Source of the DNA: Mantamonas sphyraenae STR306
Taxonomy: Eukaryota; Protista; CRuMs
DNA: 64,000 bases
Direction: 5' to 3'
NCBI GenBank assembly: GCA_026936335.1
Contig: JAPMXV010000022.1
Span: forward strand, 124,001-188,000
Position numbers and translations under genes: made by a program. Under the pieces are notes generated by a model. The model made no database searches. It worked only from the letters and a program-made list of their open reading frames with translations, and was not told where the DNA came from. Shown here one piece after another: positions 1-34,876 of the stretch (position 1 is the stretch's first letter; each line of letters begins with the position of its first letter).

Positions 1-3000
1 ATACCCGGAAGCCCAACCGGCCTACGCCATGCCCATGGCCAACAGCCCCTACCACCAAACACCCCAACCGCAGCATCCATACATGCAGCAGCAGTACATG
101 ACCTCGCCTGCAGTCCAAGTGGAGCAGCAGCAGCTCGAAGCGCTGAAGAAGATCAGTGAGATTCAAGCAAACGTACGTGGCCCACGCACCACGCACCACG
201 CACCACCCATCCACGCAGGAGCGCTCTCCATTTCCAATCATCCCCCTCATTCCTCATGGCTTGAAGCCACAACGTCACACACTCACACACTCACCCACAC
301 TGTACAACATCGTTCCACAGGCGCGCTCCATCGCGGCGTCAGCCAACTCTGCGGTGGAGGAGGCACAACGCAAGGCAGAAACGGAGCGACTGAAGCGGAA
401 GCTGGAGGACGCAGAGCGGGAAAAGTTTGAATGCGAATCGCGCTTGTCATTGCAGGTGCAGGAGCTGCAGGGCAAGAACAAGATGCTGAGCAAGCAGAAT
501 CACTGGTTGGAGCAGGAGTTGCAGGAAAAGAGCCACCAGGCGGACCAGCACCTGGGTCAGGTGGACATGCTGGAGAGCAACATTGCCCAATTGCAGAAGG
601 AACTGGAGCAGCGCAAGGAACACGTGGACACGCTGCGCAACAAGGTGCAGGAGTTGCAACTGGCCAAGCAGGCAGAGGTGGGCCAGAGCAGCAGTGCACG
701 CGAGGCATACCAGGAAATGGAACGCAAACTGAGCGAGGAGACGCGGAAGCGGTTTGAGGCGGAGGAAAAGGTGCATCGGGCGTCCATTGAGCTGGACCAA
801 AAGGTGCAGGAGTTGAACCGGGCCACGGGACACAACAAGGACCTGGAACACGCGGCGATGCAGCACGAGAGTGCGCTCAACAGGCTCAAGTACGAGTTGC
901 AACAAAAGACGAACGAGCTGGAGCGAGTGCAGATGACTGCCAACGAGCAGGCGCAACGCCTGGTCCAGTTTGAGGGCGTGCAGGCCACGGCGGAACGCAC
1001 ACGCTTGGAACTGGACGAAATGAGCAAACGGTTCCGTTTGGCGGACCGTGAGAGGTCGCAACTGGAGGCAACGTTGCAGGAGGTGCAGCGGGATTTGGAG
1101 CAGGCGCGCGGCAGCGGCAAGAACACGCTGGCCAAGCTGAAGGCCAAGGAGCGTGCACACGAAACGGAGGTGAAGGAGCTGCAGCGTGAGCTGGAGCAGA
1201 CGCGCACGGACGGCGAGGCGGCGCTGCGGGAAAAGAGCGCAGATTTGAACCGTGCCACCGAGCGTCTGCGGGTGCTGGAAAAGAAGGTGGACACGCTGAC
1301 TGCGGAAAAGGTGCAGATGGAGCGGGAGATGATTGTGATGCACAACGGCAAGAGCGATGCAGAGCGACAGCGGCAGGAGATGGAGCGCAAGCTGCGCGAG
1401 GCTGTGCAGAAGCGCGAAAAGGCGGAGCAGAACCAGCGCATGGCCGAAGAGCAGCTGAGGCAGAAGGGCACTGCGTTGCAAGAGTTGCAGATGCAGCTGA
1501 GCAAGGCAGGGGTGGCGTCGAAGCAGAGTGAACGGGACGCAGCCAACAAGTTGGAGAAGCTGACGCAGGAGGCTGCACGTGTGCGCAAGGAGATGGAGAG
1601 CAAGCTGTTGGGACGCAGCCAGGAGGTGGATCAGCTCACCGCCAGCGTGGCGCAGCTCACACGGCAGCGTCAGCAGGAACGTGAACGCCTGGCCAAGCTG
1701 GAACAGGACAACCGCGTGTTGAAGGAACGTGCCCAACAGGAAGAAGGCAACGCGTCGCAGCTGGCCGACGTGGTTGCCCAGCTGGACGCACAGCTCAAGG
1801 CCAAGGAGGGCGAGCTGGCACGCGTCAGCAACACGGTGAACGAACTGGTGCTTGTCAGGCAGCAGGAGGCGGCCCAGCGATGGCAGCTGCAGGAGGAGCT
1901 GAACAACAGCAGCACGCGGCTGGACAGCGAGGAGAGTGCGCGCCGCGAGGCGCAGGAGGCTGTGGAGGAGGCACGTCGTGAGACCACGCGTGTCACAGAC
2001 GCACTGGCACGTGCGGACAAGGAAAAGGCGGCACTGCAGGCTCAGGTTGATGAGAAGCAGGCAGAGTTGGAAAGCGAACAGCAGGCGCTGAGTGCAGCGA
2101 ATGCCAAGCTGAGCAAGGCGGCCAAGGATCTGAAAAAGGCAAAGAAGCTGATCAACAACCTGAAGACGGCGCACGAAGAGCTGCGCACGGAGCGCGACGA
2201 GGCGCACGCGCGTGCGGAGCAGCATGCAGAGCACAAGGAGCGCAGCCAGACGGAAGTGGAGTCGTTGAACCGCAAGCTGGAATCGTTGGAGGACACCATG
2301 CAGATGCGAGAGAGGGCCATGAGTGTTATGAGTGCTTTTGATGGCATGTCACAGTTTGGCGACGACATGCCAGGGTCGCCGAGTGCGTTTGTGCGCACGC
2401 TGCCGACGAGCAGCAGCCAGGCGAGTGGCATCAGCGCACAGCAGCACCGTGCGCTGGAGGAGGAGCTGCGGACAAAGGAGGACGAGGTGGAGGCGCTGGA
2501 ACGCAAGGTGCGCACCTTGGAGGAGGAGGTGCGCAAAGCCAAGGCGAGCGCTGCGGATGCGGCGAGTGAGATCGAGCGCATGGAGCAGGAGCATGCGGCG
2601 GCGGTGCAGAACAAGCGCAGGGAGGTGGAGAAGCTGCGCAAGGCGTTGCAGGACAGGGAGGAGAAGCTGTCGAAGCACAAGGAGAAGCACACGCAGCAGT
2701 TGCAGTTGGTGCGTCAGCAATCGGAGTTGGAACTGAACCAGACGCGTGACTCGCTGGAGCAGCAGATCCAACGGGTCAAGGGCGAGCACGAGACGGCGCA
2801 CGGACACGCGACGTCGCTCAAGGGTCAACTGGAAGAGTTGCAGAAGGAGCTGGCTCGCGAGCGAAAGGAGCACGAGCGTGCGAGCAAGGCCTTGGAAAAG
2901 GAGTGGAAGGGCAAGGTGGAGGCGGTGGAGGAACAGCTGAAGAACGCAAACAAGGCTCGCATGGAACTGGAGCTGGAGGTCAAGTCGCACCAAAGCACAA

Positions 3001-6000
3001 TTGGCGAGAAGGAAAAGGCTGTGGGCGAGCTGGAAAAGTCGCTGCATCGCAAGGTGCAAGAGTTTGACCTGCACCGCACAGAGAGCAAACAGAGCATCGA
3101 CTCGCTGGCGGAGAAGCTGGGCGAGGTGGACCGAGAGCGTGCAGAGAAGGAGCAGGCGATGAAGAACATGCACGAAAGCCACGGTGAGGCACTGCGCAAG
3201 ATGAAGAGCATCCAGCAGATGCGACAGAACAAGCTGAAGAAAGAGCACGAACGGGCCATGGAAGAACTCAAGTCCAGCCTGCAGAGTCAGCTGGAGGAGG
3301 AAAAGGCGCGTGCGCGACGCGGCGAGGACGAGGCGGCACGTCTCAAGGCTCGCTTGGAAGAAAGCGAGTCGGCGCTGGCCAAGGAGACGGAAACACTGCG
3401 TCGCGAGGTGGAAAAAGCGGAGCAGGATCTGGAAAAGGCGCGTGGGGCAAACGCACAGGCGCTGAAGGCACACAAGGAGGACGTGACACGACGCAACGAG
3501 GACCTGAAGAAGGAGCGCGAAAAGGTGGCCGAGCTGGAGAAGCTGCTGAAACAGCAGGAGAATCGCATTTCGTCGCTGCGCGTGTCGTCGAGCGAAGAAA
3601 AGCAGAAGTTGAAGGCGACGATGGAGAGTGTGGAGAAGGAGAAGAAGGAGCTGATCACGCGACAGAACACAGAGGTGGAGAAGCTGAACACACGCATCAA
3701 CCGGCTGCGCGACGAACACTCGCGCGAGCGGCAGCTGCAAAGGTCCAACTCGCAGATGGAGATGGACCGGCTGAAGCAAGACATCGAGTCGCAAAAGGCG
3801 CAGGTGTCAAAGGAGATGAACAAAGCGGTGCGGGAGAAGGAAAAGGAGCTGGTGGCAGCAAACAAGAAGCTGCTGGAGACGAAGCAGCAGCTGTCGCGCA
3901 AGAAGAAGGAAATGGTGGCTGCAGCGAAGCAGGCGGAGCTGGAGCAGCTGGAACTGCAGCGTGCGCTGGAGGAGCAACACCTGGAGTCGCAGGAGCGAGG
4001 CAAGCTGCTGGAGGAGCTGGCGGGTCTTGTGGAGGAGATGAAGCAGAAACACGAGGCGTTGAAGGCGCGTATGGACTCGACGGTGGAAAAGAGCTCTGCG
4101 GACGTGGCCAAGGCGGTGGAAGCACATCAGCGCTCGCAAATGGAAATGCACAAACAGCTGGAATCGATGCAGAAGGAGCACGAGCGCAAGACGACGTCGA
4201 TGACGGCGAACCTCAAGGCGGAGCTGATGGAAAAGGGAGTGGAGGAGCGCAACCAACTGCTGCAGGAGCACCAGGCGGAGTTGAGGGAGGTGGAGGCACG
4301 CGTGGAAGCGGCTCGTGCGGAAACAGAGGCGGCACGTGCCGAGAAGGAGGAGGCGCTGAAGGCACAGGCGGCGCTGATGCGTCAAGAAGTGGAGGCAGCC
4401 AAGGCACAGTTGGAAGCACGCAAGGGAGAGGTGGCAGCAATGGAGAGAAAGATGGAGGAGACAGAACGCAGGTCGCAGGCGGCAGTGAGCAAGCTGGAGA
4501 GTGCTCTGGAAACAGTGCGTGCAGAGGGAGAGCGTAAGCTGGAGGAAAAGAGCAACGAGGTGTTTGCGCTGATGAAGCGGCTGAACAAAGTGGAGGCGGA
4601 CGGCCTTCAGGAAAACCGAAAGCACCAGGACTCGCTGAGTCGCACAAAGCTGGAGATCGAACAGATGGTGTCGCTGAAGGACGACGAGATCCAGGAGCTG
4701 AAGATGCGCGAGGCACACCTTACGCAGAAGCTGGAGTACGAGACGCGCAACTTCCACGAGGAGGAAGGGCGGATCAAGGAGACTCTGGGGGAGCGACTGC
4801 GCACCAAGGAGGAGGAGGTGGCAGAACTGAAGAGCAAGGTGCGTGAGCTGGAGCAACGTCAGACGCAGATGTTGCATTCGGATTCACAGCGTGTGCAGGA
4901 GGTGAAGCAGGAGAACGAGGGCAAGATGCGTGAGCTGAACTTTGTGGTGGAGGATTTGCGCAAGCAGGTGTCTGGGCTGGAGCGGCAGCGTGCAGAGGAT
5001 GCACGTGAGGCAGCGACGGCGATGGCCAAGGCGACGCAGGATCTGGAGTTGAAATTGCGTGAGAAGGGCTTTGAGGAGCGCAGCCAAGCGCAGAGGATCA
5101 ACGAATTGGAAAACCAGCTGCGACGCCAGGAGAGCGAACACGGAGAAGCCGAGGCGCGGCTGGCGGGCAAGCACGCGGTGGAGCTGAAGGAGAAGAGCAT
5201 TGCGTTGGAGAATGTGGAACGACGTCTGCAGGAAGCGCGTGAGAAGCACAGCACGGAGGTGCGCGAGCTGACGGTGGCGCTGGAGCGGGCAAAGGAGGAA
5301 GGGGAAGTGAGCAGGAACGCACACCGACGTGAGGCGGAGAGTGCACAGGCGCAGCTGCGAGAGTTGGAAATGGCGATGGCAGTGGAGAAGCAAAAGGCGG
5401 CGTCGGTGTTGGAAAAGACTGCGAATCAGCTGCAGAGCCGTGTGGATGCAAAGGAGCATGAGTTGGAGCGTGTGCGCAGCAAGCTGGAAGACGAAGCGAA
5501 GCTGGTGGCCAAGGAGCACGAGCGACGCGTGGAGGAGCTGGAGAAGCAGATTGCTGGGTTGGAGCGACAGGTGCGTGAGAGCGGCGACCGCAACGAGGTG
5601 TTGGCACGTGAGAGTGCAGCCGAGAGCAAGGCGTTGGAGGGCCAGGTGCAACGACTGGTGGAGGAGAAGAAGGCGAGCGAGGCACGCGTGGCAGACATGA
5701 TGCGGGACATCCAGGATTTGCACCTTGCTCTGAGCGAGGTGGGCAAGGCCCGGGAAATGGAGGGACGGGAGGCGGCGTGGGCGCTGGAGTCGCTGCGCAA
5801 GGATCTGGAATCGCAGCTGGAGAGCAAGGCAAACGAAACGAGCATGCTGAGCGACCAGGTGAAGAGCATCGGGGCACGCAGCGAGGCAGAGTTGGAGAAG
5901 CGTGCGCGAGAGGCAGGGGCGGCGACGGAAAAGGCGGAGCGTGCGTTGGAGGAGTGTCGTCGCGAGCTGACGTTTGTGAAGGAGCAGAGCGCACGTGTGG

Positions 6001-9000
6001 AGAGCGGCCTGAAGGAGGAGGTGCGTGTGCTCAACGACAAACTGGACAGCAACGCACGCGATTTCGTGGCACGGCTGGAGGCGAAGCAAAACGAACTGCT
6101 CAAGGTGTATGCACAGGTGGCAGAGGCGGAAAAGGCGCACGGGGAAGAGATGCAAGCGCTGTCAAAGGAGCACAGCGAGGCGCTGGCAGAGGCGGAAGAA
6201 CGCCTGCGGGCCAAGGTGCAAACAGTGAATCAGCTGGCGGAACGCGTGCAGGCGGCGCAGCGCAAGGCAGCGCAGGATGCGGCGGCGGCTGTGGAACTGA
6301 ACAAGGCGCTGCGTGAGAAGGAGGCTCTGGTGCTGGAAAAGGACATGGCCATGCAGGCTGCGGCTACGGCGGCACAGTCGGCGCAGGCGGAGCACGAGCG
6401 AGAGGTGCGACGGCTGATGGAGGAGCGAGAGCGTGCACGCGGGGAGGCACAGGCACGCGAGGTGCGTGCGCGACAGGAGGCTGCAGAGGCGGCGATGCGT
6501 GGGGACGAGGCGGCACGTGCCAAGGCGGAAGAGATGCGTGCGGCGGCAGCGGAGGCGGAGCGTGTGCGGCGTGAACTTGCGCGTGAGTTGGCAGAGACGC
6601 AGAAGGAGCTGCAGGCGGTGCAGCTGAAGTTGGACGAAACCAAGATGCGCTACGAGGTGGAGGTGAGTGCGAAGAAGGAGGCGCTGGTGAACCGGGAGCA
6701 GCAGAGCGAGTGGGAGTCGGCACGCAAGCGGGAGGAGTTGGAACGTGCGGTGGCGGCGGTGGAGGAGAGGGAGCGTGCGGCGCGGGAAGAGGTGCGTGCA
6801 CGTGAAGCGGCTCTGGAGCGGATGCAGGAGAAGCTGGAAGAGCAGCGTGTGGAGGCGTCGCGTGTGGAGGCAGGGCTGCGAGAGGAGATTGGGCGTGAGC
6901 GACTGCGTGTGATGGAGGTGGAAAAGAGCAAGCTGGCGGAGGTGGCGGAGGTGAAGGAGAAGCTGATGGCGCAGCAGCGTGCGCAGGAGGCACAGCTGGA
7001 GGCGTCTGCGGAGCGTGTGGTGGAGGAGAAGCAGAGGCAGTTGAAGGCGATGGAGGTGGCACAGGGCCAGTTTGAACGGGAGGTGAGCAAGCTGGAGGTT
7101 GCGTTGGCACGCAAGGAAGAGGAGCAGAACGCCATGTTGGCCAAGGTGCAGGAGTTGCGGGAGGTGATGCAGAGCATGGAGAGGGAACACCGGGAAGAGG
7201 TGGCGGAACTGCGTGCACAGATGGAGCGTGTGCGTGGGGAGATGGGCGCACGTGTGGCAGCCGCGGAGGAGGCGCGTGCGAACGCTGTGCGGGAGGTGAA
7301 GGAAACGATGGGCCAGCTGGTGGGTCAGAAGGAAGGGGAGGTGGACAGCCTCAAGGCGTTGCTGGCGGCCATGCGTGAGGAGAAGGAGGGACTGAACAGG
7401 ACGACAGACTCGCTGCTGGCCAACGTGGAGTCGTCACAGAGCGTGCGGCAGGCGGAGGTTGCGGAGGTGCGCAGCCGACTGCGGGAGACGGAGGAGAAGC
7501 GTGCGTCGGAGGTTGCGGCGCTGCGTGCACAGATGCAGGAGGCAAAGGAGCGTGCAGAGAGTTTGTTGAGCGACAAGACACGGGAGGTGGTGAGTGCACA
7601 CCGCAAGATGGCCAAGATGGAGTCGGAACGGAACAGGGAGCGTGCAGAGGCGGAGAGCAGGTTTGCCAGCGTGGTGGGCGAGCTGGAACGCAAGCTGGAA
7701 GAGGCAAAGGAGAAGGTGGCGGAGGAAAGAGCGCGTGTGCAGGAAGCAAAGGAGAACGGAGCACGGGAGGCGGAGCGTGTGCGTGCGAGCATGGAAGAAC
7801 ACGCACGAGAGCTGGAACGAGAGGTGGCACGTGAGCAGCGTGCGGCGTTTGTGCTGGAACAGAAGCTGGAGCAGGCCAAGGTGGCGCACGGACAGGAGTT
7901 GCGGCTGGCGGAGGAGCGTGTGGAGAACGTGAAGCGGGCGTACGAAAAGGAGCTGGAAAGCAGGGGCCACGAAACGGAACGGCTGCAGGGACGGCTGGCG
8001 GCGGCGGCGTCGGAGGCAGACAAACACCTGCGTGAGCAGCAGGAGGCGTGGGCGGAGGCACGACACATGCTGGAAGAGGAGGTGGACACGCTGAAGCGGC
8101 AGTACGCGGAGCAAGTGGGCCTTGTGCGTGCGGCAGAGGAAAAGGGGCGACAGAGCGAACGGGAGCTGCGACACGAGATGGATGTGCTGCGTGGGGAGAT
8201 GGAAAAGCGTGTGGAGGAAGCGAAACGGGAGGCGGAGAGACTGCGTGAGGAGGTGGCAGCGGCACGGAATGAGGCAGAGATGGTGCGCAAGGAGAGTGAG
8301 TTCCAACTGCGTGGCCTGCAGGAGGGCAGGGATGCGCTGGCAGCGCAGGCTGCGGCTGAGGCGGAGCGACTGCGGGAGGAGATTGGCAAGGCGCGGGCAG
8401 AGACGGCGCGTGCGGAGGAACGAGGGCGCAAGGAGGTGGAAGCGGTGGAAAAGGCGCTTCGGAAGGAGGTGGAGCGTGAGGAGCGACGGGTGACAGAGGT
8501 GAAGAGTGAACTGGCGGGGCTGGAGCGACGTACGCGGGAGGAGGCGGAGCGCGCGGAGCGAGCGGCGGAGGAGGCACGACGAGAGTGGGAAAAGCGACTG
8601 GAGACGAGGAGCAGCGAGTTGGCGAGTGTGCAGGCGCGTCTGGAGGCGGTGCAGGCGGAGTATGCGCGTGAGGCACGCCGTGTGTCGTTGGAGGCGTCGA
8701 GTACGGCCAGCGGGCGAGAGGAGCGGGAGAAGGAGAGGAGTGGGGAGATGCGACGCATGGAGGCGGAGGTGAGACGGTTGGAAAAGGCGTTGCAGGAGGC
8801 ACAGGAGAAGCGAGAACGCGGGGAGTGGCAGGCAAAGCAGGAGTTGGAATTGAAGGCAAGCGAGGTGCGCGCGTTGCAGGCGCAGCTGGCAAGTGTGCAG
8901 ACGAGGTTGGTTGAGGCGGAGCGGGAGGCAGAGACGGAGAGTGGAAGGGTGCGTGAGCTGACGCAGCGGCTGGATGCACAGGTGAGGCGGGAGGCGGAGG

Positions 9001-9557
9001 AGAAGAAGCGTACGCACACACAGCTGGAGGAGCTGCAGAGGAGGGCGGACGCAGAGGTGGAGGCGCTGAAACGAGAGCGGGAGGCAAGCACACAGGAATG
9101 GGCAGGCGCAAGTGTGGTGCTGGAGCGTGAAATCCGTGCGCTGGAACAGGCGCGGCAGGTGCTTGTGGAGAAGCATGCGACGGAGCTGACGATGGTGCGC
9201 AACGAACATGCGACGGTGGTGGCACGGATGGAGGCGGAACACGAGCGTGCACTGCGTGTGGCGCAGGAAAAGGGAGTGGCTGCGGTGGAGGCGGCCAAGG
9301 CAGAGTGTGCGACGAGACAGAAGGAAACGAAGGAGGAACACAGACAGGCGGTGAAGGAGCTGGAGGAGAGGCTGGGTGAGATGCGCATGGAACACGAGGA
9401 GAGGCTGCTGGAGGAGCGGCGTGCGCATGACAGGGACCTTCGCGAACAGGAGGAGGCATTGGAGCGGAAGTTGCGGGAGGTGCAAAGGGCCCACGAGGTG
9501 CAGGTTGCGGCATTGGAAGCCAGGGTGGGTGGTGGTGGTGGTGGTGGTGCAGAGTGA
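1..9557 (+). CDS. Giant coiled-coil protein A (>=3,135 aa, possibly 5'-partial); exons <1-172, 321-9557
   Basis: The Q/P-rich frame (ORF 29..430) is open to the window edge. A phase-0 intron 173-320 (GTACGT...CCACAG, CA-rich) joins it to ORF 156..9557. The rod is E/K/Q/R/A/L-rich, with prolines essentially confined to one hinge (~2319-2435). No motor or globular domain is visible. Confidence 0.85.
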
Positions 9558-9634
9558 TGAGGAGATGGTACAGGAAGGGAGGAAGGGTTGCGTGCGCCCA
9601 TCAATGCAAGACATCTTTAGTGACGAGCATTTCG

Positions 9635-21600: not shown

Positions 21601-24600
21601 CGAGCGTCTGCGGGAGGCGGAAATCACGCATTTGGACCAAAAGACGCAGCTGAAACACGGACTGGAGGAGCGCATCCGCAGCCAGGAGATGCAACTGAAC
21701 GACAGGGCACACCAGCTGGAGACGTTGAACAGGACGCTGATGCAGCAAGAGGAGGCGCACCGCACACGCCTGCAGCAGATGCACCAAGAGCACGAGCTGC
21801 AACTGACAACGGCCTTGCGCGACGTGGACACTCTGCACACAACCATGGGCGAACTGGAGTCGCAGAAGGAGGTGGAGAACGAAAAGCTGACCGCGCAGTT
21901 GGCAAGCATGCGTCGCGAGTTTGAGGCGGCGTTGCAGCAGAAGGAAATGGAGCTGAACGCAAGCCGGGAGCGACTTGAGGCAGCACGCACGAATGCAGAG
22001 GAACAGCAAAAGCGACTGGAGAGCGAACTTGCACGCGAACGCAGTGCAAGCAAGGAAGAGCTCGGGCGCAAAGAAACCGCACTGGCGCACGCCAACCGAC
22101 GCGTGGAGGAGTTGGAGAAACAGCGCGTGTTGGAGTCGAAGGAACTTGCAGAGCAGATGCGTGCGATGGCCGAGAGCAGCCAGAGCGAGGTGAGCGACAA
22201 GATGCGCGAGCTGATGGATGTTGGCTCGCGTCTGCAACAGCTGGAGAACGAACACCGCAACGCACTGGCAGCCCACGAACGGGAGCATGAAGAAACGGTG
22301 AAACAGTGGGAGCTCAAGGTACAACTGGCGGAGGAGGCCGGCGCCAAGGAGTTGGCGAGCCAACAGCGTGTGATGGACAAGAAGCTGAAGCAGGCACGTA
22401 AGGATGTGGAAGAGGCACGACAGGCCCACGAAGCATTGCGTGCAGAGAGCAAGGAGCGCATCGATGCGTTGGAGGCGTCGTTGCTTGCGTCACAGCAAGC
22501 GCACAGCGCAGCAGAGCGGGAGGCGCGCGACAAGGCGGAGCAGGCGCGCCAGGAGAGCAACGCCACCCAACTGGCACTAAAGATGGAATTGAAGGACGTG
22601 AGCAGACAGCTGGAGGCGGCACAGGAGAAGATGGAGGCGATGGAGACGCGTCACCGGGAGACGAACGAGCGCACGGTGAGGGAGAACGAACAGGTGCAGG
22701 CGGACCAGCGTGCAGAGATCGAGCGTCTGCGGGAACAGGTGTCGGATCTGCAAACGGAGCTTGCTGTGGAGCGTGAGCGAAGGACTGGGGATTTGGAACA
22801 CGCGCGTGCAGAGGCAAAGGAGAAGTTGGAAGGCAAGGTGGAGCAGATCCAGTCGATGAACGCAACACTGGTGGAGATGGAATCGAACGCAGGCACTCTG
22901 AAGCAGGTCATCGAGGAACGGAGCAAGGAGGTGGAGCGGCTGCAGGGCGAGGTGGCCAAGGCAAAGGAGAGTCAGAAGCGCAGTGCAAGCGAAGTGAAGA
23001 GCCTGCAGCGTGCGATGAAACAGGCGGAAGAGATGCACCAGGCGCAACTGAACGAACTGCACGGGGAAAAGCAGCGCGCCGAGGAACGCGCACAGAGCGT
23101 CCAGGCGGCGTTGCAAGAGGCACAGCGCAAGGCAGAGCTGGAGAACCGAGAGTATGCGGACGCACGCGAACAGCTGCGTCAAAGCTACGAGGGCCGTCTG
23201 GCACAAAAGAGCGAGGAAATCCTGGAGATGACGCGTGCTGTGAGCGCGGCAGAAGCAGAAGCGGAGCGGCTGCGGCAGGAGCAGGAGCTGCGTCTGAGCC
23301 AGGCGCGATCGCACGCGGACGAGCTTGCACGCACACACACGGCACAGATGGCACAAGCACAACAGAGCCACCAGGTGGAGATGCGACACCAGACACGCGC
23401 GTTGGAGGAGTTGAAGGAGCGCGTGGACGAGATGAAGGAGCGCCACGAAGCAGAGCTGCGCGGTACACAGGAAAGCCTGGGAAGGCAACTGGAACAGGAG
23501 GCGCAGAGGGCACAGGCCTTGGCACAGCAATGTGCACAGCTGGAGCGACAGGTGGAGGCCCTGGAGAGGCGAGAGGGCGAGATGAAGCGCGCTCACGAAG
23601 GTAGGCTTGCAGCACAGCAAGCGGATTTCGAGCGTGTGATGGAACGCACGCACGAGCAGCACAGCTATCTGCAGCAGCGCCTGGGCGAGTACGAGGAGCG
23701 ACTGGCAGGCGGCGAGGCCGAGGCACCGCTGCGTGAGCTGAGCAGCAAGATGGACGCAATGCTGGCAGAGACCAACACGCGCATCCGGGACCTGAACGGA
23801 ACGATGCACGAGATGGAGGTGAGCCACGCGGAGGAGAGCACGAAGCTGGAGCTGGAGAACCGCAACCTTGCGTCGCGACTGCAGGAAAAGACAGAGAGCC
23901 ACGCAGCGCTTGCGGAACGCGTGAGTGCGCTGGAGCAGAAGCTTGAGGCGGAACGATTGGAACACGCACGCATGATGAGCGACCTGGCGTCGGACAAGGA
24001 GGGCGAGGTGGAGGATTTGAAGAGGGTGCTGTTTGAAGCCGAGGCAGCGCACTCATCGCAGAGCCGACAGCGCTCGGAGGAGATGAGCCGTATGCGGGAC
24101 GAGCTGCAGGAGCAATTGCGTGCCAAGAACGAAGAGGTGAACCGACTGGTACGCGAGCTGGGCAGCAAAGACGTGGCCATTGCACAGGTGAAGCACGAGG
24201 CGGAAGAGATGCTGAGGAAGCAGGAAACGGCCACCGAGCGTGCGTTGGACGCGATGAAGAAGGAAATGCGCGAGGCGGAAAAGGCGGCGCAGGCACAGCT
24301 TGCCGCGCGGCCGTGGGCAAGAAGGAGGACGAAATGGAGGCGTTGGCAAAGGAGCTGAGCGACGAGTTGCACACGCGCGAACGCGACATCCAACAGCTGA
24401 CGGTGGAGCTGGGCAAGCAGGTGACACGTGCGGAGTTTGAGGCACAGCGTGCTGCGGACCAGCTGAACCAGTCGCGCAAGGAGTCGGAGTTGTTTGCTTC
24501 GCTGCAGGCGTCGGAAGCAGACAAGCTGAACAAGAGCGTGGCGAGTGTGCAGAAGCAGCTGAGTGCAGAGGCAGCGCGTCGCAACGCTATGGTGCGCGAC

Positions 24601-27600
24601 TTTGAGGGCAAACTGGCGAGCAAGGGCAAGGAGGTGGAACAGCTGCAGCGACGCAACAACGAACAGCGGGTGGCGGCAGAGGAGCGGGAGAGGAGGCACG
24701 CAGACGAAGTGGCTCAGGTGCGTCGCGAACGCGAACGTGACCTGGAGGTGAAGGAGAAGGAGATGGACAAGATGCGTGCGGAGCTGAGCCAGCTTGCAAG
24801 CAAGCACGAGAAGGACATGGAGCGCGTGGAAGCACACCACGGCAGCGTGGTGGCACGCATGCAGCAGGAAGCTGAGGCTGTGAAGAAGGAGCTGCGGGAG
24901 GTGCAGGCGGCGCTGGGCAAGGCAGAACAGGCAGTGGCCGAGGAGAAGCGTGTCACCATGCGTGAGCGACACGCAGCCGAGCTGGAGAAGGAAGCGGCAG
25001 TGAGAGAGCAGGAAAGCGTGGCGGATGCGTTGCGCGAACGCATCGCCGAGCTGGAAACACGCTTCAGCGAACAGTGGAACGAGGCGAGTCTCAAGTCGGA
25101 CAGCATGATTGAGCAGATGCGAGGCGATTACGAGCGCAAGAGTGCCGAGGTGGTGCAGCTGTACGCACGCGTGAGCGAGCTGGAGAAGCAGGTTGCGTCG
25201 GGCAAGCAGAGTGCAGGGCGCAAGCTGCAAGAGGAGGCGGCCAAGGCGGAACGAGAGCAGCGCGAGTTGCGCGACCAACTGGAAGCGGCCAAGCAGAGTG
25301 CAGCCGAAGCCAAACAGGGCGCAGAGACACAGGTGCGCGAAGCCAAACAAGCCGCAGAACGTGCAGCGAGCGAGGCGGAGCGTGCGGCGGACAAACGTGT
25401 GATGGAAGTGGAGCGTGCGCTGGGCGAACAGGTGAGCGCGCTGGAGATGCGACTGTTCCAGAGCGAAGAAGCGGCGAAGAATGCAGCGACGGCAAGTGAC
25501 AGTGCACGCGTGGCGGCGGAGAAGAAGGTGGAAGAGTTGAGTGGGGAGTGCGAGCGACTGCGTGAACGTGTGCAGAGCGTACAGGCGACGGCCGAGGAGG
25601 CACGACGCGGGTACGAATCGGCGATTGAGGAAAGCAAGCGCAGCGCAGACGCGAGTGTGGAGAAACTGCGCAGCCGTGTGGAAACACTGGAGGCCGAGGT
25701 GGAAGCGCATCAGAAGACGCGCACCGAGGCGGAACGGAGGGTGGAAGAGGCGACAGCGGCGGCACAGGCGCGTGTGGAGGAAGTGTACACACTGAAGAGA
25801 CAGCTTCAGGAGGCGTCGACGGCACACAAGATGCAAACGCAGCAGGAGAAGCACGAGCGAGAGCGAGAGCTGAACAAGCTGGAGGCGAAGCTGGAGGCAC
25901 GCGAAAACGAGGTGGCAGGGCTGCAAAAGGCGCTGCAGGAACAGCGTGTGCGCTTCGACGAAGAGCAAAGCAGGCTGGAAAAGAGCATGGACGAGATGAA
26001 GCGTGAACACGTGCAACAACTGCGCGTGAAGAACGCAGAGCTGGAGCGCGCGCGCAGCGAGGCCTCTGCAGAACTGAGCAAGGCCGAAGAGAACCAACGG
26101 GAGCTGGCCATGGAGATGCAGAGCAGCCGCAGCCTGATGGAACAGAAACTGGCCAGCAAGGATTCGGAGATCTTTACGCTGAACGGAGAAATCACACGGT
26201 TGCGCTCGAGCACGAGCGAAGAGCTGCGCAACATGAGCCAGGACCTGAGCAGCAAGGAGACAGCGCTGCAGCAGATCATCGACAGCAAGCAGCAGCAGAT
26301 CACAGAGCTGCGTGAACGCGTGTTGGGCCTGGAAAAGAGCATGGAGAACGAGCACGAGCGACGCGAACGTGCAGTAGACAGCGTCAAGCGCGACCACGAG
26401 CGTGCATTGGGCGAAAAGGCAGAGGCCATCCGCGAGCTGGAAAGGCGCCTGGAGTCGGAGAAGCAACGATTGAGTGCCGATGCTGAACGTGCAGCACGGG
26501 AGGCGGCGCTGGAGAAGCAGCAGCTGACGAAACAGGTGGCGGATCTGGAGGCTGCACACAAGCAGACAGAAGGCCACGCAAAGACTCTGCAGGAGAAGCT
26601 GCTGGAGAAGGAGGCGACGTTCCGGGAGACGGTGGCCAGCGAGGGCAAGACGCACGAGAGTGCGGTGAATGCGTTGCGCCAGGAGGTGTCCACGCTGCAG
26701 GAGCAGTTGAACGGCGTGCGTAGCGCGCTGGAGAAGAAGGACAACGAACTGGCGTTGCAGGTGGAGCGATCGGCGAGGCAGCTTGCGGCGGAACTGAACG
26801 CAAAGCAGGCCGAGGTGGAGGCGGCTCAGAAGGCGCTTGCAGACGCGACGGGGGCGGCGGAACGAGAGCGCAAGAGCATGGAACGAGAGGTGGCAGACAT
26901 GAAGCACAAGGTGGCCAACGCAGAAAAGGCTGCGTTTGAGCAGGCGAGCAAGGCCAAGGAGAAGCTGGACAACGCAGAGAGGCGATTTGCAGAGGAGATG
27001 ATGCGCGTGCGTGAGGATGCGAAACGCAGCAAATCGATGCTGAACCAGAGGGTGGCACATCTGGAAGAGAAGAACGAGATGAAGAACAGGGAGATGATGG
27101 AACTGCACGAGCGCATCCGGGAGATTGCGGCGGACCACCAGTCGGAGCTGTCGAACAGGGACGAGGAGGTGCGACGATTGAACCGATCGCAGATGGACGA
27201 CGTGCAGAGCAAGCAGAGTGAGGTGGACGCACTCAAGGCACAGCTGACTGAGAAGGACATCAAGCACGCGGCTGAGCTGAAGGCGCTTCAGGGAGAGCTG
27301 GAACGCAAACACGAGAGCCAGCACATGCAGATGGAGCGGCTGGAAATGGAGAAGAGGGAGTGGGACAGGCAGCGCGGAGAGATACAAGCGCGTCTGGACA
27401 GGAGCAAAGACCACCTGGATGCACAGATCAACGCGTTGAAGAACGAACACGTGTTGATTGTGCGACAGAAGGAGGACGCACTGCGAGACATGCAACGCAA
27501 GCGAGAAGAGGAAACAGCGCTGGGCGAGCTTGCGCTGCAGCGTGCAGGAGACCAGTTGGAGCGTGTGAAGCAGGACCACGTGGCGGAACTGAAGATCCGC

Positions 27601-30600
27601 GAGTCGGAAATGCGCCTTGCGCAGGAGGCGATCGTGCGCAAGGAGAAGCAGGCGAGCAGTCTGGCAGAGCGTGTGAGCGAGCTGCAGGCGAAGCTGAATG
27701 GAGTGGAGGAGCGACTGCGCAGCAAGGAGGCCGAGTTGAACGCACGCATGAACGAAATGGCCAGCAACGAGGCGAGGGAGCAGATGGAGAGGCAGAACAT
27801 GCAACACGAGCTGGAGATGACGAGGCAAAAGATGGAAGCGGAACTGATGGCACGCAACACGGAAATGGAGCGGCTGCAGGGCGTTCTGCGTGACGCAGAG
27901 AGCAGGCACGACGACGAGGTACGTCGTGTGGAACGCGAACTGGAAACGTACAAGGTGGAGATGCGTGGCGAGCTGGATGCACGCGGCGCGGAGGTGCGGG
28001 AGCTGGAACAGCGGCTGGAGGAGGCGCAGGGCAGGGTGTTGGCCGAACGAGAGGCCAAGACCAGGGAACTGGCGGCACAGGCACGCGAGTATGAAGAGCG
28101 ACTGGAGGCCAAGGAGGCAGACGTGAGCCGTTTGCACGAACGGTTTGAAGAGGTGTCGCAGAGGCATGCGGGCGATTTGCAGAATGTGTCGCGGGAGGGC
28201 CAGACGCAGGTGAAGGAGTTGACGACGAAACTGATGGCGGTGCAATCGATGCACGACATCCAAAAGACAAAGCTGGAGGAGGCTGCGACGACGCTGGAGC
28301 AGCGGGAGGGACGCATTGCGACGCTGGAGCGTCTGTTGAAGGAGGGCGAAGACCAAGCACGCAGCCTGGAGGCGAGCGTGAGTGTGGCCGAACGTGAAGG
28401 AGCGTCAGAGAAGAACAGGCTGGAGGAGGAACTGAAGCGGGTGCGTGTGGCGCACGAGCGACAGGTGAATGGCCTGGAGGGGACGCTGCGCGAGCGTGGA
28501 GTACGCATCCGCGAGCTGGAGGACCAGGTGAAGGCGTTGCAAAAGGCAGGCGTGCTGGAGAAGCAGGAGGCAGCGGCCGAAGTGTCGCGTGCAGAGGAGG
28601 CAGCACGCATTGTGGGGGAGGAGCTGGCACGCGTGCAGAGGCGTCTGGAAGAGGTGCAAGCCAAGGCCGAGGCGGAACATGCCAAGATGCGCGAGGAGAA
28701 CGAGCGTGCGGCAAGCGAAGCAGCGGATGCGGTGCGCATGAAGAACCTGGAAATTGAGAATGTGAAGCGGATGCTGGAGGAGAGCGAGAAGCAAAGTGCG
28801 CGTGCGGTGCAGGCGGCAGAGATGAACGAGGAGGCGAGCAAGGCGCAGGTGGAACACCTGAAGGCACAGGTGCGCGAGTTGCGCATGAGTGCAAACGAGC
28901 AGGCGGAGCAGATGGAGGTGGAGTTGAACGAAACGATGCGTGTGTTTGAGGCGTCGCAGGGCATGTTCAACGAACAGTTGAGCGAAGCCAACGCACGCTC
29001 GCGCTACCTGGAAGAGGAAAACGCAGGGCTGCGTGGAGAGATGGCGCGTGGAGAGGCCGAGCTGCGTGCAGAGCTGCGCGAAACGCGTGCTCGTCTGGAC
29101 AGCGAGTTGGCAGAGAAGAACGAGGCGCTGGCGAGTGTCAAGAGTGAGCTGGCGGAGGTGCGCTTCGAGTTGCGTGGCACGCAGAAGGAGCACGCCATGG
29201 CGGTGGCTCACATGGAACGCGAATGGGAGAACAAGCTGCGTGCAGCCACAATGGAACGCGATCAGGCGCGGCATGAGGCGGCGGAGGCGGCAACACGCAA
29301 CGAGGCACTGCTGCAGGACACAAAGAGCAGCCACAGCAACGAGGTGGAAGAGTTGACGGCGGCCCTGCTTGCGGCAGAGGGGGAGAAGAGGCGAGCCGAG
29401 GCCGAGGTGGAACGATTGCGCAAGGAACGCAAAGCGGCAGCGGCGGCAGAGGCAGCAGGCGCGGAGGAGAATGCCAAACAGGTAGAAGTGGCACAGGAGG
29501 GTGCTCGCGAGAGACATGCGCTTGAAGAGGCGGTAAAACGAGCGCAGCGTGAAACAGAGATGGAACGGGAGAGGAAGGAGGATGCAGAGGCGGCCATGCG
29601 TGAGGCACAGGGCAAAGCAGAGGCGGCGGTGGCACAGGTGCGTGAGCTGGAACGTGCGGTGCACGAGGCGCAAACACAGCTGAAGATTGCGGAGCAGAGC
29701 AATGCGCACGAGTTGGAACGGGTGCGTGGACAGGCGGAGATGGAGCGAAAGACGTTGGAGATGGAAATGGCGCAGGTGCGTCACCAGCTGGACGAGGAAA
29801 AGAGGCGACGGGAGGCAGATGCGGTGAGTGCAGGCGAACGGCTGGAGGCTGCCAGGGCGGAGATGGGCAAGCAGCTGGGGGCGAAACAGACAGACGTGGA
29901 ACGTCTGGAAGCGAAGCTGGAGCGGGTGGCAGAGAAGCACAGGCAGGAACTGGGCAGGAGGGAGACGAGCATGGAGAGCGAGCGGTTGAGTCTGAAGGAG
30001 CAGGTGCGCGAGAAGGAGACGGAAATCCGAGAGCTGCTGGCACGCATTGCGTCCATGGAAGAGGCGCGCGTGCGTGTGGCGGATGAACGAACAACGAAGG
30101 AGGGCGAATTGCGTCGTGAGTGTGAGGCCAAGGTGCGTGAGGCGTCGCTGGAGCTGGAGCAGGGGATGAATCAGTTGCGTGAGGCAAGACGTGCGGCGGA
30201 GGAGACGCGAGAGAGGGCGCGTGTGAGCGAAGAGCGTGCAGACACGCTGGCAGAGAAGCTTGCGGCGAGGACGGTGGAGTTGGAAGAGGCACGCAAGGCG
30301 GTGGAGACGACGCGTGGGGACGCACGTGTGGCAGCGCTTGCGGCAGAACAGGTGCAGAAGAACATGGCACGCGAACACGCGGGCGAGGTGGAACGTCTGC
30401 AGATGGCGGTGACGCAACACAAGGCGACCATCGAGTCGTTGGAACGACAGGTGGGCAAACAGGTGGAGGAGAGGCAGCGTGAGGTGGGCGAGCTGCGCAA
30501 GTCCATGGAGACAAGCGAGGAGCGACACGCGCGTGTGGTTGCGGAAATGAGCCGTGCCAGCAGCGAGGTGGAAGCCAAACGCGACGCGGAGCTGCAAAAG

Positions 30601-32770
30601 TTCCTGGAGGAGAGTCGTGAGCGTGGGGAGGCGGCGACGCGGGAGACGGTGGCGTTGCGCGAGGCGATGGGACGTGTGGAGAGCGAAGCAAAGGAGCACG
30701 TGCGTGAGGCGGAACGTGCGGCGGAGGAGTGGAAGGCAGAGGTGGCACGCGTGCGAGAGGAGGCGGAAGGGATTGTGGCCGAGTGGCAAACGCGCATGGA
30801 GGCAGAGCGTGTGACGATGGAGGGAGACAAGAGGGAGGCTGTGGAGAGGGCGATGCGGGAGGTGGAAATGATGCGGATGGAGTTTGAGAGCGAACTGGGC
30901 ATGCGCAACAACGAGATTGGGCAGTTGAAGGAGCGCATCAAGGTGGAAGAGCATCGTGCGAGCAGCGAGATGCGACACGCACGTGAAGAGACACGCAAGT
31001 TGCAGGAGAGCAACCTGGGTCTGAAGAAGCGTGTGGGCGAGCTGGAACGCAGCGTGGGCGAACTGAGCAGCAGGTTGGAACAGAGGCGCAAGGAGCACGA
31101 GCGCCTGCAAGCGGAAATGGAGGCTCGCAAGCAGGCGGCGCTGGAAACGAAGCAGAAAGAGGTGGAGAGCGCACAATCGCAGGTGGCGATGCTGAAGATG
31201 CAACTGTCGCAGGATCTGGAGACAGAGAGGCGACGCAGCGTGGACCAGGTGCGACAGGCGCAGCGTGCGGCTGAGCTGGAGGTGGGTGCCAAGGAGAAGA
31301 AGGTGGCGGAGTTGGAGGAGGAGCTGAGCAAGGTGGTGGAGGCACACGAGGAGGCACTGCGTGTGGCGGCGGAGGAACGCGCAGAACTGTTGCGACAGAA
31401 GCAGGGCGAGGTGGCAGAGTTGGAGGCAAAGGTGGAAGACAAGGAACGATGGGTGGAAGAGGAGCGGGTCAAGATGGAGCGCAACGTGGCCAAGGTACGC
31501 AAGGAGTGGAAGGCAGAAGTGGAGGCCAAGGAGGCGGAGATTGTACGTGTGCACGAGGAGATGGAACAGTTGGAGACGATGCACAAGGCGGCGAGTGACA
31601 AGATGCGACGTGCACATGGCGAGGAAATCGAACGGCTGAAGGCCATGCTTGGGGAGCGGGAGGAGCAGCTGAAGGCACTCGGGGCGCAGATGACGGCCAA
31701 CGAGCAGGAGAGGCGTGCGGAAGAGGAACGCATGCGACGGACACACGACGAGGCATTGGCCACATTGCGTGGGGAGCTGGAGGAGAAGCGTGAGACGGCG
31801 GTGGCGGCGGTAAAGAGGGAGATGGGAGCAGCGGCGACGGCGTTGCGACGGCAATTGGAGAGTGCGCGTGCGAGCGAGGAACGCAGCCAGCGTGAGGTGG
31901 AGGAGGTGAAGCGGGAGATGGCGTACGAGAGGGAACGATCGCGGGATGTGAAGGAGGAAGTGGAGCGTGTGCGACGCGAGTGGAGGGAGGAAGTGGAGCG
32001 AGTGCGGGGAGAGTGGCGTGCCGAAACGGAACGGCTGCGAGAGACGGTGGAAAAGAAGGAGCAGGCGTTGCGACGAGCAGAGGAGGAGGCGATGCAAGAG
32101 AACCATGCACACGTGATGGCAATGGCAACGGCGCAGAGGGAGAGCGAAGAGAGGGTGCACGCGGCCAAGCAGGAGACAGTGGATGTGCAGAGGGAACTGG
32201 GAGAGGTGCGTAGCAAGAGCGAGGTGCGTGTGGCGCAGCTGGAGAAGCAGGTGCGCAGCTTGCAGGATCAGCTGGACGGAGTGCGACGCAGCAAGGAGCA
32301 GGAAGTGACACGTATGCGTGAGGCGATGCAGCAGGCAGAGGTGGCAAGTGCACAGAAGCTGCAGATGGTGCGTGGGCAGCATGCAGAGGAGAAGAAGGCT
32401 CTGGAGGCAGGGGTTGCGGAGAAGGAGAGGCAGATGCGTGCGGTGGAGAAGGAGATGGAAGTGGAGGTGGCACGGCAGAAGGAACAGGTGCGTGCGATGA
32501 AGAGGGAGGTGGAGACCGCACAGAGGCAGGTGAGCCAGAGTGCACGGGAGGCACAGGAAGCCAATAGCATGGTGCGTACGGTGCGCAAGCAGCTGGAGGC
32601 AAAGGAGAAGGAGTACAACAAGCTGCAGGGACAGATGGAGGCAACAAGCGCCCAACTCAAGGAGATGGAGGCCAAGCATGCGGCCTGCGTGGAGAGAGAA
32701 GAAGCGTGTGGAGACCGAGTTGCGTGAGGTGCGAGCACGACTGGATGGGTTGCAAGGCGGCAGCGGATGA
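9635..32770 (+). CDS. Giant coiled-coil protein B (~7,600 aa); exons 9635-9913, 10004-10498, 10643-10939, 11054-32770, with two apparent indel frameshifts (~24308, ~32695)
   Basis: S/T/G-rich head (MSSSSPF...). Phase-0 introns 9914-10003 (GTAAGG, branch GCTGAC, CAG), 10499-10642 (GTACGT...ACAG) and 10940-11053 (GTAAGT...CAG; 11071 is also in frame). ORFs 11072..24358, 24313..32727 and the tail of 32540..32770 give continuous coiled-coil sequence across the two frame changes. The start codon is inferred. Confidence 0.8.
14606..15121 (+). repeat. Four consecutive units of a degenerate 43-aa (129-bp) protein repeat; representative stretch in protein B
   Basis: Units start K-NNAL, R-DGEI, Q-QQEL and A-DDEA, and the next starts K-TLDI. 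Counted spacing is 43 aa each (14606 to 15122 = 516 nt). His recurs at position 26 and E-[HYL] at 36-37. Confidence 0.75.
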
Positions 32771-32820
32771 TGAGTGAGTGAGGGAGGGAGGAGAGGGAGG
32801 GATTGTGAATCGGACAAGCT

Positions 32821-34440
32821 CTACGTGGATTGCTTCTTCAGCCACTTGTCGTGGGCCTTTTGGTGGGCCTTGAGCAGCTTGGTGAGCTTCTTGAGACGGC
32901 TCTTTGTGAGTTCGTTGCCGTCTGCGTCGTGGGTGGGGAAGCCCGAGTCGTCAAAGGCGGAAAACTCGGGGTCGTCGCGGAAGAGCTGGTCGGGTGGAAT
33001 GGCGGCTTTGGCATCCTTCTCGGCCTGGGCAGCGTCTGCGGCAGCCTTGCGTTCGGCCTTGATGCGTTCGGCCTCCTGGGCTTGTGCTTGCTCGGCGGCA
33101 AGCTGTTCCTGGATGGCCTTCTTGTCCATGATCTTCCACTGGGTGGCGCCGTCTCGATCCTCAAAGATGACGCCTGTGGGCGGGAGCTGGTTGTCGCGCA
33201 CGTCGTCGCAGAGCTGGAGCAGTTGCTGGGTCAGACTGCTGCTCTCGGCGGCAAGGGCAAGGTTGCGGACCTGTGTGCGGAAGGAGGAAAACACATCGAG
33301 GACGGGCTCCATGGCGCTGCTGTCTGCGTCGCCCTCTGCGGCGGCAAAGCCCATGAGGTCGCGGCCGTTGAGGCCAAACACGTCAAAGAGGCGCGCAATG
33401 TACTTGGCAATGGAGGCCAGGAGCTGTGCGCGCACAGGGTGTGCTGCCTCCTCCACGTCGCGCAGGTACAGGTTGACATCCTTGATGAGCTGCTGAAGGG
33501 CAAGCATGGCGGTGGGCGTGTCGATGTTGTCCAGCAGGGCCGCGTGGACGTCGGCCTTGGCCTGAGCAAACTTTGCCTGAAGGGTGTGCTCGTGGCTGCC
33601 CCACTTCTCCGGACCTCCCTGTGTGCCCTTGCTGCTCTGTGCGTACCTTCGCATTTCCACGCTGACATTGGCGAAAAAGTCGACAAAGGCCTTTTCCACG
33701 GCCTGGGCCGTGTTGAGGCTGTCGGTGCTGTACTGCATCTGTGCGCCGTAGCGGTGCTGGAGAAAGAGGATGCGGATCTGGCGTGCGGTGTAGGTGTCCA
33801 GCACCTCACGGATGGTAATGAAGTTCTTGAGACTCTTGCTCATCTTGCGGCCGTGGATGTGCAGGTGACCCGAGTGGAGGAAGTAGTTGATCCACTGCTG
33901 GTGGCCGTAGTATGCCTCGGCCTGGGCCAACTCGTTGTCGTGGTGGGGAAAGGTCAGGTCCACGCCGCCGCTGTGGATGTCGATAGTCTTGCCCAGGATG
34001 GCAGAGGCCATGACGGAGCACTCGATGTGCCAGCCGGGCCTTCCGTTGCCCCATGGCGACGTCCAGAAGGGTTCTCCCTCTTTGCTGGCCTTCCACAGAG
34101 CAAAGTCGCTGGCGTGCTTCTTGTCGTCGGCGGTGGTGCCCAGCTTGCCCTCGCCTTCGGCCAGGAGCTCGGAGTTGCCCCATGCACCGGGGACCAATTT
34201 CGGATAATTGTGCACTTCGGCGAACGCGTGCGTGTCAAAGTACACACTGTTGTTGCTCTCGTATGCAAATCCATTGGCAATGATCTGTTCGATGTAGGCG
34301 ACAATTTCGGGGACGTATTCGCTGACACGTGTGACGGTGTCGGGTCGTTCGATGCCCAGGGCGTCGAGGTCCTCAAAGAACTCGTTCTCAAAGCGGCGGC
34401 TGATGTCCGTGAAGGGCACATTCTGCTCGTTGGACGCAAT

Positions 34441-34476
<36 letters not shown>

Positions 34477-34794
34477 CAGGTGGATGTCGTAGCGGAAGTA
34501 ATCGCGCAGGATGCGTCGCAGGATGTCGAAACTCAGGTAGGTGCGTGCGTGGCCCAGGTGTGCGTGCGAATAGACGGTGGGACCGCAGGTGTACCACGTC
34601 AGCGTGTTGGGTGCCCCATCCACCGCAGAGGCAGTGATGAAAGGCACCTGAGAGTTGGTGAGGGAGTTGTGCAGCTGCAACGGCACGAATTGCTCCCCTT
34701 CCGGCTGGTCCCACGGCGGCCTGCTTGTCGTGTCATCGTCCAGCGACGTCACCAACGATTGGTCTTTCACTTGCTGAGGTTCCGTGGTGGTCAT
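32821..34794 (-). CDS. CARS1: Cysteinyl-tRNA synthetase, cytosolic eukaryotic type (657 aa, intronless)
   Basis: WYTCGPTVY..HLGHAR (HIGH), MNITDVDDKII, DFALWK, PWGNGRPGWHIECS, HSGGVDLTFPHHDNE and KMSKS motifs, plus the eukaryotic C-terminal ...D..G.PTHD..G.EL.KS tail. ATG at 34794. Confidence 0.97.
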
Positions 34795-34876
34795 TCCTTT
34801 TCTGAAAGGGGGGAGGGTGTTGAGGTGGGCGACCCCGCGCAACTGGGGTTCCCTGTGTTTGCATGTCGAGAGAGGG

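Follow-up and report, generated by a model that had tools for sequence, protein, structure and literature searches.

The genes described here, A and B, run through the first half of a 64,000-nucleotide stretch of the genome of the marine flagellate Mantamonas sphyraenae (strain STR306; hereafter the window), which corresponds to bases 124001-188000 of contig 22 (JAPMXV010000022.1) in the assembly of 25,061,354 bases and 78 contigs that was searched in this work. Their sequences mark them as tandem paralogues encoding giant alpha-helical rod proteins, in which a coiled coil with a composite period of 12 core positions per 43 residues (43/12) extends over approximately 55 units in A and 153 units in B. 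A and B form a new family of a known kind of protein, unusual in having a very regular composite period. Our best explanation, held with moderate confidence, is that these paralogous rods act as structural elements of the cell.

The 43-residue period and its repeat unit

Four long open frames on the plus strand span positions 147-32724 (147-9554, 9431-10996, 11027-24355 and 24037-32724), the second and third of which are one and the same reading frame. Glu, Arg, Ala, Leu, Lys and Gln are abundant in all four, and proline is almost absent. This composition accounts for the coding strand being strongly skewed towards purines and for the numerous long open reading frames (ORFs) in antisense. In an autocorrelation analysis (BLOSUM scores, compared with shuffled sequences), an offset of 43 residues stands out in the A frame (z 8.8), the first B frame (z 20.2) and the second B frame (z 10.1), with harmonics at 86 and 129 and side peaks at 7, 11, 18, 25, 32, 36 and 50, all of which are offsets near whole multiples of 3.58. 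None of the three frames has a peak at 28, 35 or 42 (z at 28 is 1.2-2.5). The mean local Fourier power of a hydrophobic indicator peaks at 3.57-3.58 residues in each frame (power 9-12, against noise of approximately 1), and this period of 3.58 equals 43/12. The second B frame gives the strongest 3.58 signal of all (power 12.2) and contains no proline in 2,805 residues.

The sequence-only reading that preceded this analysis had counted a 43-residue register by hand in a few stretches and had described the rods as nearly proline-free. The register extends far beyond those stretches: the autocorrelation covers approximately 9,000 residues in three frames, and in a sliding window the 43 signal begins near residue 950 in A and residue 1000 in B and is unbroken up to the end of each protein. 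Prolines are confined to the heads, the linkers and a hinge in A, with a single one (residue 4582 of B) in the approximately 9,000 rod residues. The proteins thus have the hydrophobic stripe of 3.5-3.67 residues and the scarcity of Pro and Gly that are typical of alpha-helical coiled coils in general, together with the 12 core positions per 43 residues of a composite 43/12 coiled coil (from 70 aligned units and the autocorrelation). Both switch period sharply, from 3.51-3.53 (residues 306-982 of A and 188-1000 of B) to 3.58 thereafter.

Five other giant coiled-coil ORFs from the same genome (contigs C5, C49 and C50) served as controls. Their hydrophobic period is 3.50-3.52 in four cases and 3.46 in the fifth, their z scores at offset 43 range from -4.2 to 2.4, and their own repeats are 14, 21, 28 or 42 residues long in four (only 7, 14 and 21 in the fifth). 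Giant coiled-coil ORFs in this genome reach 6,825 and 8,233 aa and are found on C50 (approximately 92-113 kb), C60 (156 kb), C49 (258-294 kb) and C5 (158-168 kb); those analysed have ordinary periods, and in the one on C50 a repeat of 14/42 residues is very pronounced (z 37 at offset 14).

A hidden Markov model (HMM) of the unit was grown from seven units of the sequence-only reading, namely the Lys-initiated units at 4548, 4677 and 4806 in A and four units at 14606-15121 in B, all of which read as had been described. The model matches 118 times at 0 bits or more (7 in shuffled sequences) and 44 times at 6 bits or more (none in shuffled sequences). Units are frequently spaced 43 residues apart, and spacings of 32, 36, 39, 50 and multiples are also present, so that the 32-residue variant noticed earlier is one of several. 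An alignment of 70 ungapped units places the core at columns 5, 8, 12, 15, 19, 22/23, 26, 30, 33, 37 and 41 (spacing 3-4-3-4-(3-4)-4-3-4-4). The first half of the unit is a clean heptad pair, in which columns 5 and 12 are Val/Ile, columns 8 and 15 are Leu, columns 4 and 16 are Glu, and columns 1, 9 and 11 are basic. The second half consists of two hendecads with weaker cores, in which His makes up 11-20% of columns 19, 26 and 37. The order is heptad-heptad-hendecad-heptad-hendecad, with the stripe recurring 12 times per 43 residues, and the earlier division of 43 into three heptads and two hendecads fits the observed columns.

The core-facing position of His was also found independently of the HMM: 59% of His residues lie on the hydrophobic stripe (mean cosine +0.33), compared to 14-29% of other polar residues and 39% of His residues in control coiled coils. 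Polar positions conserved in the unit are Lys1, Glu4, Glu16, Glu22, Arg34 and Glu36/38. Because these columns are conserved and offset 43 scores approximately twofold above the other near-integer multiples in B, 43 residues appear to be a true sequence unit atop the structural period. At the DNA level, Tandem Repeats Finder detects no 129-nt repeat, as the sequence-only reading had noted, and BLASTP of A and B against themselves finds no internal duplication, the rod units being too diverged for pairwise detection. The array is therefore either old, as suggested earlier, or fast-diverging.

That A and B are a paralogous pair sharing this degenerate unit, as had been proposed, is confirmed by profiles built with one protein left out. 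A profile made from B units only finds A at E 2.6e-10 (16 units at 5 bits or more) and has no significant match in any of the five controls. With the profile from A units, which is smaller, 14 units at 5 bits or more are recovered in the first B frame, compared to 0-2 in the controls. In the whole 25-Mb genome, unit matches below E 1e-4 occur at this locus only. The heptad domains of the two proteins also have in common a non-repeat block containing the motif TVNELV (1635..2018 in A and 11726..12067 in B, both on the plus strand), with 30% identity over 128 aa (BLASTP E 9e-8 in a small database, 1e-11 pairwise). This N-terminal block was the only similarity found when A and B were compared to themselves and to each other by BLASTP. 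The layout of the two proteins is the same: a low-complexity Ser-rich head (Ser with Tyr, Gly and Arg in A; Ser with Gly and Thr in B), an ordinary heptad domain of 680-810 residues, and the 43/12 rod. They differ mainly in the length of this rod (approximately 55 versus 153 units).

Gene models, transcripts and locus

Four sequencing runs contain sequence of this locus. The comparison with them covered positions 8000-12500, and runs X1 and X2 match the genome throughout the stretch compared. Run X3 was taken to be RNA-derived because its contigs carry four GT..AG joints (the kind of run was only guessed by the tool used). All of the features below are on the plus strand unless otherwise indicated.

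Gene A is predicted to encode a protein of approximately 3,394 aa (385 kDa), starting from an ATG 1,038 nt before the window. The 5' part of the gene has three predicted introns with donors GTAGGT, GTGAGT and GTACGT and CAG acceptors, all of which keep the frame (splice consensus), and its exons lead back to a Ser/Tyr/Gly/Arg-rich head. The window opens in the end of predicted exon 3 (1..172), an open frame continuing from upstream that encodes a Ser/Thr/Pro/Gln/Tyr-rich linker and the start of the coiled coil. It is followed by the third of these predicted introns, 148 nt long (173..320, GTACGT...CAG), placed by splice consensus and frame continuity, and by a giant exon of 3,078 codons plus stop (321..9557), an open frame covered by an RNA-derived contig over 8000-9650. 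Position 321, previously read as the start of gene A, is thus the start of an exon, and the gene begins upstream of the window. The giant exon encodes a canonical heptad coiled coil (321..2318, residues 306-982, Fourier period 3.51); a Pro/Ser hinge (2319..2441) that contains the sole prolines within the A rod and coincides with the period switch from 3.50 to 3.58; the 43/12 rod of 2,371 residues, or approximately 55 units, delimited by autocorrelation, Fourier analysis and sliding window (2442..9523); and a (GGT)n microsatellite that forms a poly-Gly tail (9524..9545).

A 76-nt GT..AG segment near the end of A (8904..8979) is spliced out in RNA-derived contigs of run X3. Its donor, GTTGGT, is unusual, and its removal shifts the frame to a stop one codon later, with loss of the last 190 residues. 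In run X4, a contig breaks off at precisely position 8903, where the spliced and unspliced forms would diverge, and the 190 codons past the segment stay open and keep their periodicity. We read this splicing as an alternative isoform of A with a shorter C-terminus.

Gene B has a probable ATG at 9635 and three RNA-supported introns, a correction to the sequence-only reading. Exon 1 (9635..9912) encodes a Ser/Thr/Gly-rich head and is covered by an RNA-derived contig that starts at 9627 and is joined at 9912/10003. Exons 2 (10003..10498) and 3 (10643..10938) follow in the spliced contig, separated by introns of 90 nt (9913..10002), 144 nt (10499..10642) and 114 nt (10939..11052), each with a GT..AG joint in run X3. 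The giant exon is 21.7 kb long (11053..32727) and is defined by open frames with one frame change inside. The three joints keep the frame, giving 4,774 stop-free codons from the ATG to 24304. The canonical heptad coiled coil (10286..12982, residues 188-1000, Fourier period 3.53) has introns within its span and precedes a 43/12 rod of 6,580 residues, or approximately 153 units (12983..32724; autocorrelation, Fourier analysis and sliding window), in which composition reveals two Ser/Gly hinges (17081..17164 and 19469..19609).

The apparent frame change in the assembly sequence lies in a GCGCG context at 24305..24309. Between 24299 and 24313, the coiled-coil reading moves to the next frame without a gap, and the 43 signal is strong on each side in the sliding window. 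No second copy of the region was found in the assembly. Insertion of 0, 1 or 4 residues at the break keeps the hydrophobic stripe in phase across it, whereas insertion of 2 puts it out of phase; in a control with known answers, this test recovered the true or an equivalent value in 80% of 200 trials. By this measure the break appears to fit a 2-nt surplus (one residue) better than a 1-nt loss. An intron or a programmed frameshift at 24300 was rejected, as there is neither space for an intron nor a slippery heptamer, and the change may be due to an error in the assembly, to a single allele of a diploid or to a genuine lesion. The intact B of approximately 7,240 aa that was originally read therefore crosses a frame change, and B is about 7,580 aa (860 kDa) only if that change is bridged. 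The open frame of B stops at 32725-32727, but coiled-coil sequence continues in the next frame as far as 32770, where it has a Gly-rich end; a second frame change may lie near 32700, close to the C-terminus, and only through it is the end previously given, 32770, reachable.

A single gene of approximately 10,700 aa comprising both A and B was considered and rejected, since there is no observed splice joint and no frame path between them, with or without the 76-nt splice. The RNA shows no joint across 9524-9619 nor across the A stop codon (9555-9557); the contig over the 3' end of A is unspliced to 9650 (depth 28), and the contig over the 5' end of B starts at 9627 (depth 10). As A and B are in different frames without a joining splice, they are two genes. 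The distance from the A stop to the B ATG is 77 nt, which is similar to that between the stop of a P450 gene upstream and the predicted ATG of A (approximately 90 nt). RNA contigs overlap at 9627-9650, and the untranslated regions of neighbouring genes probably overlap. The abutting ORFs with 4-nt overlaps had prompted a bacterial operon reading, which is excluded by the introns, the genome statistics and the eukaryotic neighbours (genes for a MARCHF6-like RING ligase, a protein kinase and a TPR protein).

Several other features of the locus were noted. A minus-strand ORF of 711 codons (32824-34956) converges on the 3' end of B. A plus-strand ORF of 758 codons (32809-35082) was considered as a C-terminal domain of B and rejected, as it reads like the antisense of the minus-strand gene; Pfam gave no match to it. 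The only differences between the genome and the RNA-derived contigs of run X3 are G>A and C>T changes at five sites (9029, 9615, 11476 and 11533-11534), each in a single contig, which could be alleles, errors or editing. The assembly was made from PacBio reads with FALCON, was polished with Racon and Pilon, and has a G+C content of approximately 59% (PMC10492846). The longest M. sphyraenae transcript contig is 32.28 kb (PMC10492846), near the spliced length of A plus B (approximately 33 kb), and may be the A/B locus assembled as one contig.

Relatives, structure and possible roles of the rods

Word-index searches of 5.8 billion proteins with the whole of A, the first long frame of B and the N-terminal 700 residues of A returned nothing. 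A search of 1.84 billion representatives with the unit profile returned 14 weak proteins at E 0.001 or below. Neither library contains this proteome, as neither returned A or B themselves. The top profile match, a GOLD-domain protein of the oomycete Hyaloperonospora, was rejected because its mediocre match recurs approximately 50 times in a near-identical 58-residue repeat; the other 13 match only the generic first 20-25 unit columns and have periods of 28-80. Look-alikes from the ESM Atlas were likewise discarded as generic coiled coils, and PDB sequence searches also gave generic coiled coils, the best match of the unit profile being lamin A coil 1B (E 7e-4), which is weak and covers unit positions 2-30 only.

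Pfam searches of rod pieces at E 0.01 gave nothing, and no enzymatic, motor or membrane domain was found. The N-terminal region of B has a faint match to Golgin_A5 (E 0.0034, 17 bits against a cut-off of 31.7). For the Rootletin (PF15035) and Filament (PF00038) domains there is no match in A or B, and the best matches in the genome are elsewhere and below cut-off; SF-assemblin (PF06705) has no match in A, B or the genome. Pfam also found no Myosin_tail_1 or motor head and no GRIP, GRAB, PACT or transmembrane end in either protein. A scan for intermediate-filament consensus motifs was negative, no lamin-tail domain or CaaX end is present, and only one or two weak basic clusters occur in approximately 11,000 residues. 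A literature search for a 43-residue coiled-coil repeat found no description of one. The absence of a motor or enzyme domain that had been noticed by eye is thus upheld, and full-length orthology to a characterised family, which would have undone the earlier proposal, was not found by Pfam, PDB, word-index or profile searches. The lack of relatives in very large libraries suggests a lineage-specific invention, with the caveat that these libraries lack Mantamonas and probably most of its kin.

AlphaFold2 models six units as an unbroken helix of 190 residues (mean pLDDT 86). In coiled coils, beta-branched residues at 'a' with Leu at 'd' favour dimers, and g-e' charge pairs favour parallel, in-register pairing. 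The heptad half of the unit has Val/Ile at its 'a' positions, Leu at its 'd' positions and complementary charges at 4/9 and 11/16, from which we infer that two strands pair in parallel and in register to form each rod. At 0.148 nm per residue, one unit would be 6.4 nm long, each heptad coiled coil 100-120 nm, and the 43/12 rods approximately 0.35 (A) and 0.98 (B) micrometres; recalculation gives the same total rod lengths as were given originally (approximately 0.45 and 1.1 micrometres). Since Mantamonas cells measure 3-5 micrometres, a rod of 1.1 micrometres would be a large fraction of the cell. If a relaxed helix has 3.63 residues per turn, a 3.583-residue stripe would need approximately 1.3 degrees of left-handed compensation per residue (3.7 for heptads), giving a pitch of approximately 40 nm rather than the 14 nm of heptad rods. 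Rods that are some three times less supercoiled would be straighter and would pack more easily side by side.

A and B probably build a previously undescribed structural fibre or spacer. We favour a fibre or layer, with a spacer that does not polymerise as the main rival. As structural elements, the rods could form a self-assembled fibre, a sub-membrane layer or struts on the micrometre scale; assembly would be controlled by the disordered heads, and the abundance of histidines facing the core would make stability sensitive to pH or metal. Both genes are transcribed, as indicated by the RNA-derived contigs of run X3 and their four GT..AG joints. The host is a flagellate, as was supposed. A pellicle beneath the membrane is present in other CRuMs, and no ultrastructure has been published for Mantamonas. 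Several points weigh against this explanation. The charge autocorrelation shows like-charge recurrence at 43 (as expected) and short-range i+3/i+4 pairs without the strong, attractive long-range stagger of myosin or intermediate filaments, and the charge signal is weak at periods of 43/5 and 43/4 (power 2-3.6). Residue statistics are the source of the proposed oligomer state and orientation. At the level of the genes, the three upstream introns of A are predictions from its sequence, one RNA isoform truncates A, and B carries a frame change in the assembly, possibly with a second near its end. A more specific form of this proposal, which we regard as unlikely, is that A and B represent a new class of cytoskeletal polymer of mantamonads or CRuMs: micrometre-long, nearly unsupercoiled 43/12 coiled coils with a histidine-lined core, whose assembly would be switchable by pH or metal and which would form the sub-membrane pellicle or a root fibre of this deep-branching lineage, with striations at multiples of approximately 6.4 nm.

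It is possible, although doubtful, that dimers of A (approximately 0.45 micrometres) and B (1.1 micrometres) are instead single-molecule spacers or rulers that do not polymerise, and that span a fixed distance (for example from the basal body to the nucleus, an organelle or the cortex) or set the length of a structure, akin to the giant helical spacers of other protists. Paralogues differing mainly in rod length (approximately 55 versus 153 units) would suit such a role, as would the lack of a charge pattern for staggered self-assembly and the distinct conserved N-terminal block of each protein, a potential docking site. The stiff anterior flagellum measures 0.5-1.0 micrometre, although this similarity of scale is no more than a coincidence. 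Neither end, however, has a recognisable anchoring domain, the C-termini being merely poly-Gly or a short tail, and the low-complexity heads resemble those of self-assembling filament proteins.

A periodic docking scaffold along another polymer, comparable to tropomyosin or nebulin with one site per unit of approximately 6.4 nm, seems quite improbable. It would account for the conservation of polar as well as core positions and for the height of offset 43 above the other multiples of 3.58 (20.2 versus 7-10), and five units (approximately 32 nm) equal four tubulin dimers, although this is arithmetic from established lattice spacings only. The unit itself matches neither the 5.5-nm spacing of actin nor the 4/8-nm spacing of tubulin directly, and an array in which unit lengths vary (32, 36, 50) and most units are degenerate (44 of approximately 210 at 6 bits or more) would be a poor strict vernier. 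We consider a lineage-specific nucleoskeleton, akin to lamins, plant NMCP/CRWN or trypanosome NUP-1, to be highly improbable: the head-plus-rod layout, the weak and partial lamin A match and the absence of any Filament-family gene above the Pfam cut-off in the genome are consistent with it, but the consensus motifs of intermediate filaments, the lamin-tail domain and the CaaX end are missing, basic clusters are few and weak, and the rods are 10-20 times the length of the lamin rod. Least probable of all is a decaying or mis-assembled locus in which B is a pseudogene and its periodicity a relic, for despite the frame change at 24305-24309, the possible second one near 32700 and the PacBio-based assembly, the 2,805 downstream codons are open, free of proline and strongest in 3.58 signal (power 12.2) in a purine-rich sequence with frequent stops in the other sense frames, the stripe stays in phase across the break with one residue allowed, and the 5' part of B is transcribed and correctly spliced.

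Sustained periodicities other than the heptad have, to our knowledge, been described chiefly in short segments or small proteins. A natural rod with a composite 43/12 period over approximately 150 consecutive units, or about 1 micrometre, offers a test case for how periodicity sets supercoil, stiffness and packing. We know of no molecular data on the cytoskeleton of CRuMs, a supergroup near the base of Amorphea. The two genes make up 0.13% of a 25-Mb genome and are transcribed, and are first targets for determining what shapes this flat, plastic, gliding cell.

Comparison with known coiled-coil systems

The contrast with the 28-residue repeat of myosin and the 29-residue repeat of SF-assemblin and beta-giardin that was drawn in the sequence-only reading is borne out, as offset 28 has no peak and offset 29 only a minor one. 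Like the rods proposed for A and B, those of myosin II and paramyosin are long, proline-free two-stranded coiled coils with a super-repeat laid over heptads. Their repeat consists of 28-residue zones with occasional skip residues, a skip residue being equal to two hendecads. The myosin rod has four such extra residues, whereas A and B have one every 43 residues over thousands; A and B also lack the offset-28 peak, a motor, a Myosin_tail match and a charge stagger of the 98-residue type. SF-assemblin and beta-giardin are fibre-forming coiled coils of protists with a non-heptad composite period and a non-helical head, but that period is 29/8 (3.63) rather than 43/12 (3.58), and A and B are 10-30 times longer.

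Rootletin is a large coiled coil that forms a striated flagellar root; it has approximately 2,000 residues, and A and B have no match to its domain (PF15035). Intermediate filaments and lamins resemble A and B in having a disordered head rich in Ser, Arg, Tyr and Gly (the heads are alike in composition only) and a rod with a hendecad-containing part. Their rod is approximately 310-350 residues long, compared to 3,000-7,400 residues in A and B, which have no Filament domain, end motifs or tail domain. Golgins, pericentrin and other giant tethers are likewise giant and mostly featureless coiled coils; A and B lack a GRIP domain, a PACT domain, a transmembrane end and any Pfam match that would place them in these groups, and a sustained 43/12 period is, as far as we know, not a described feature of such proteins. 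The other giant coiled-coil ORFs of M. sphyraenae are similar to A and B in size and composition, but have ordinary periods and no significant match to the unit profile.

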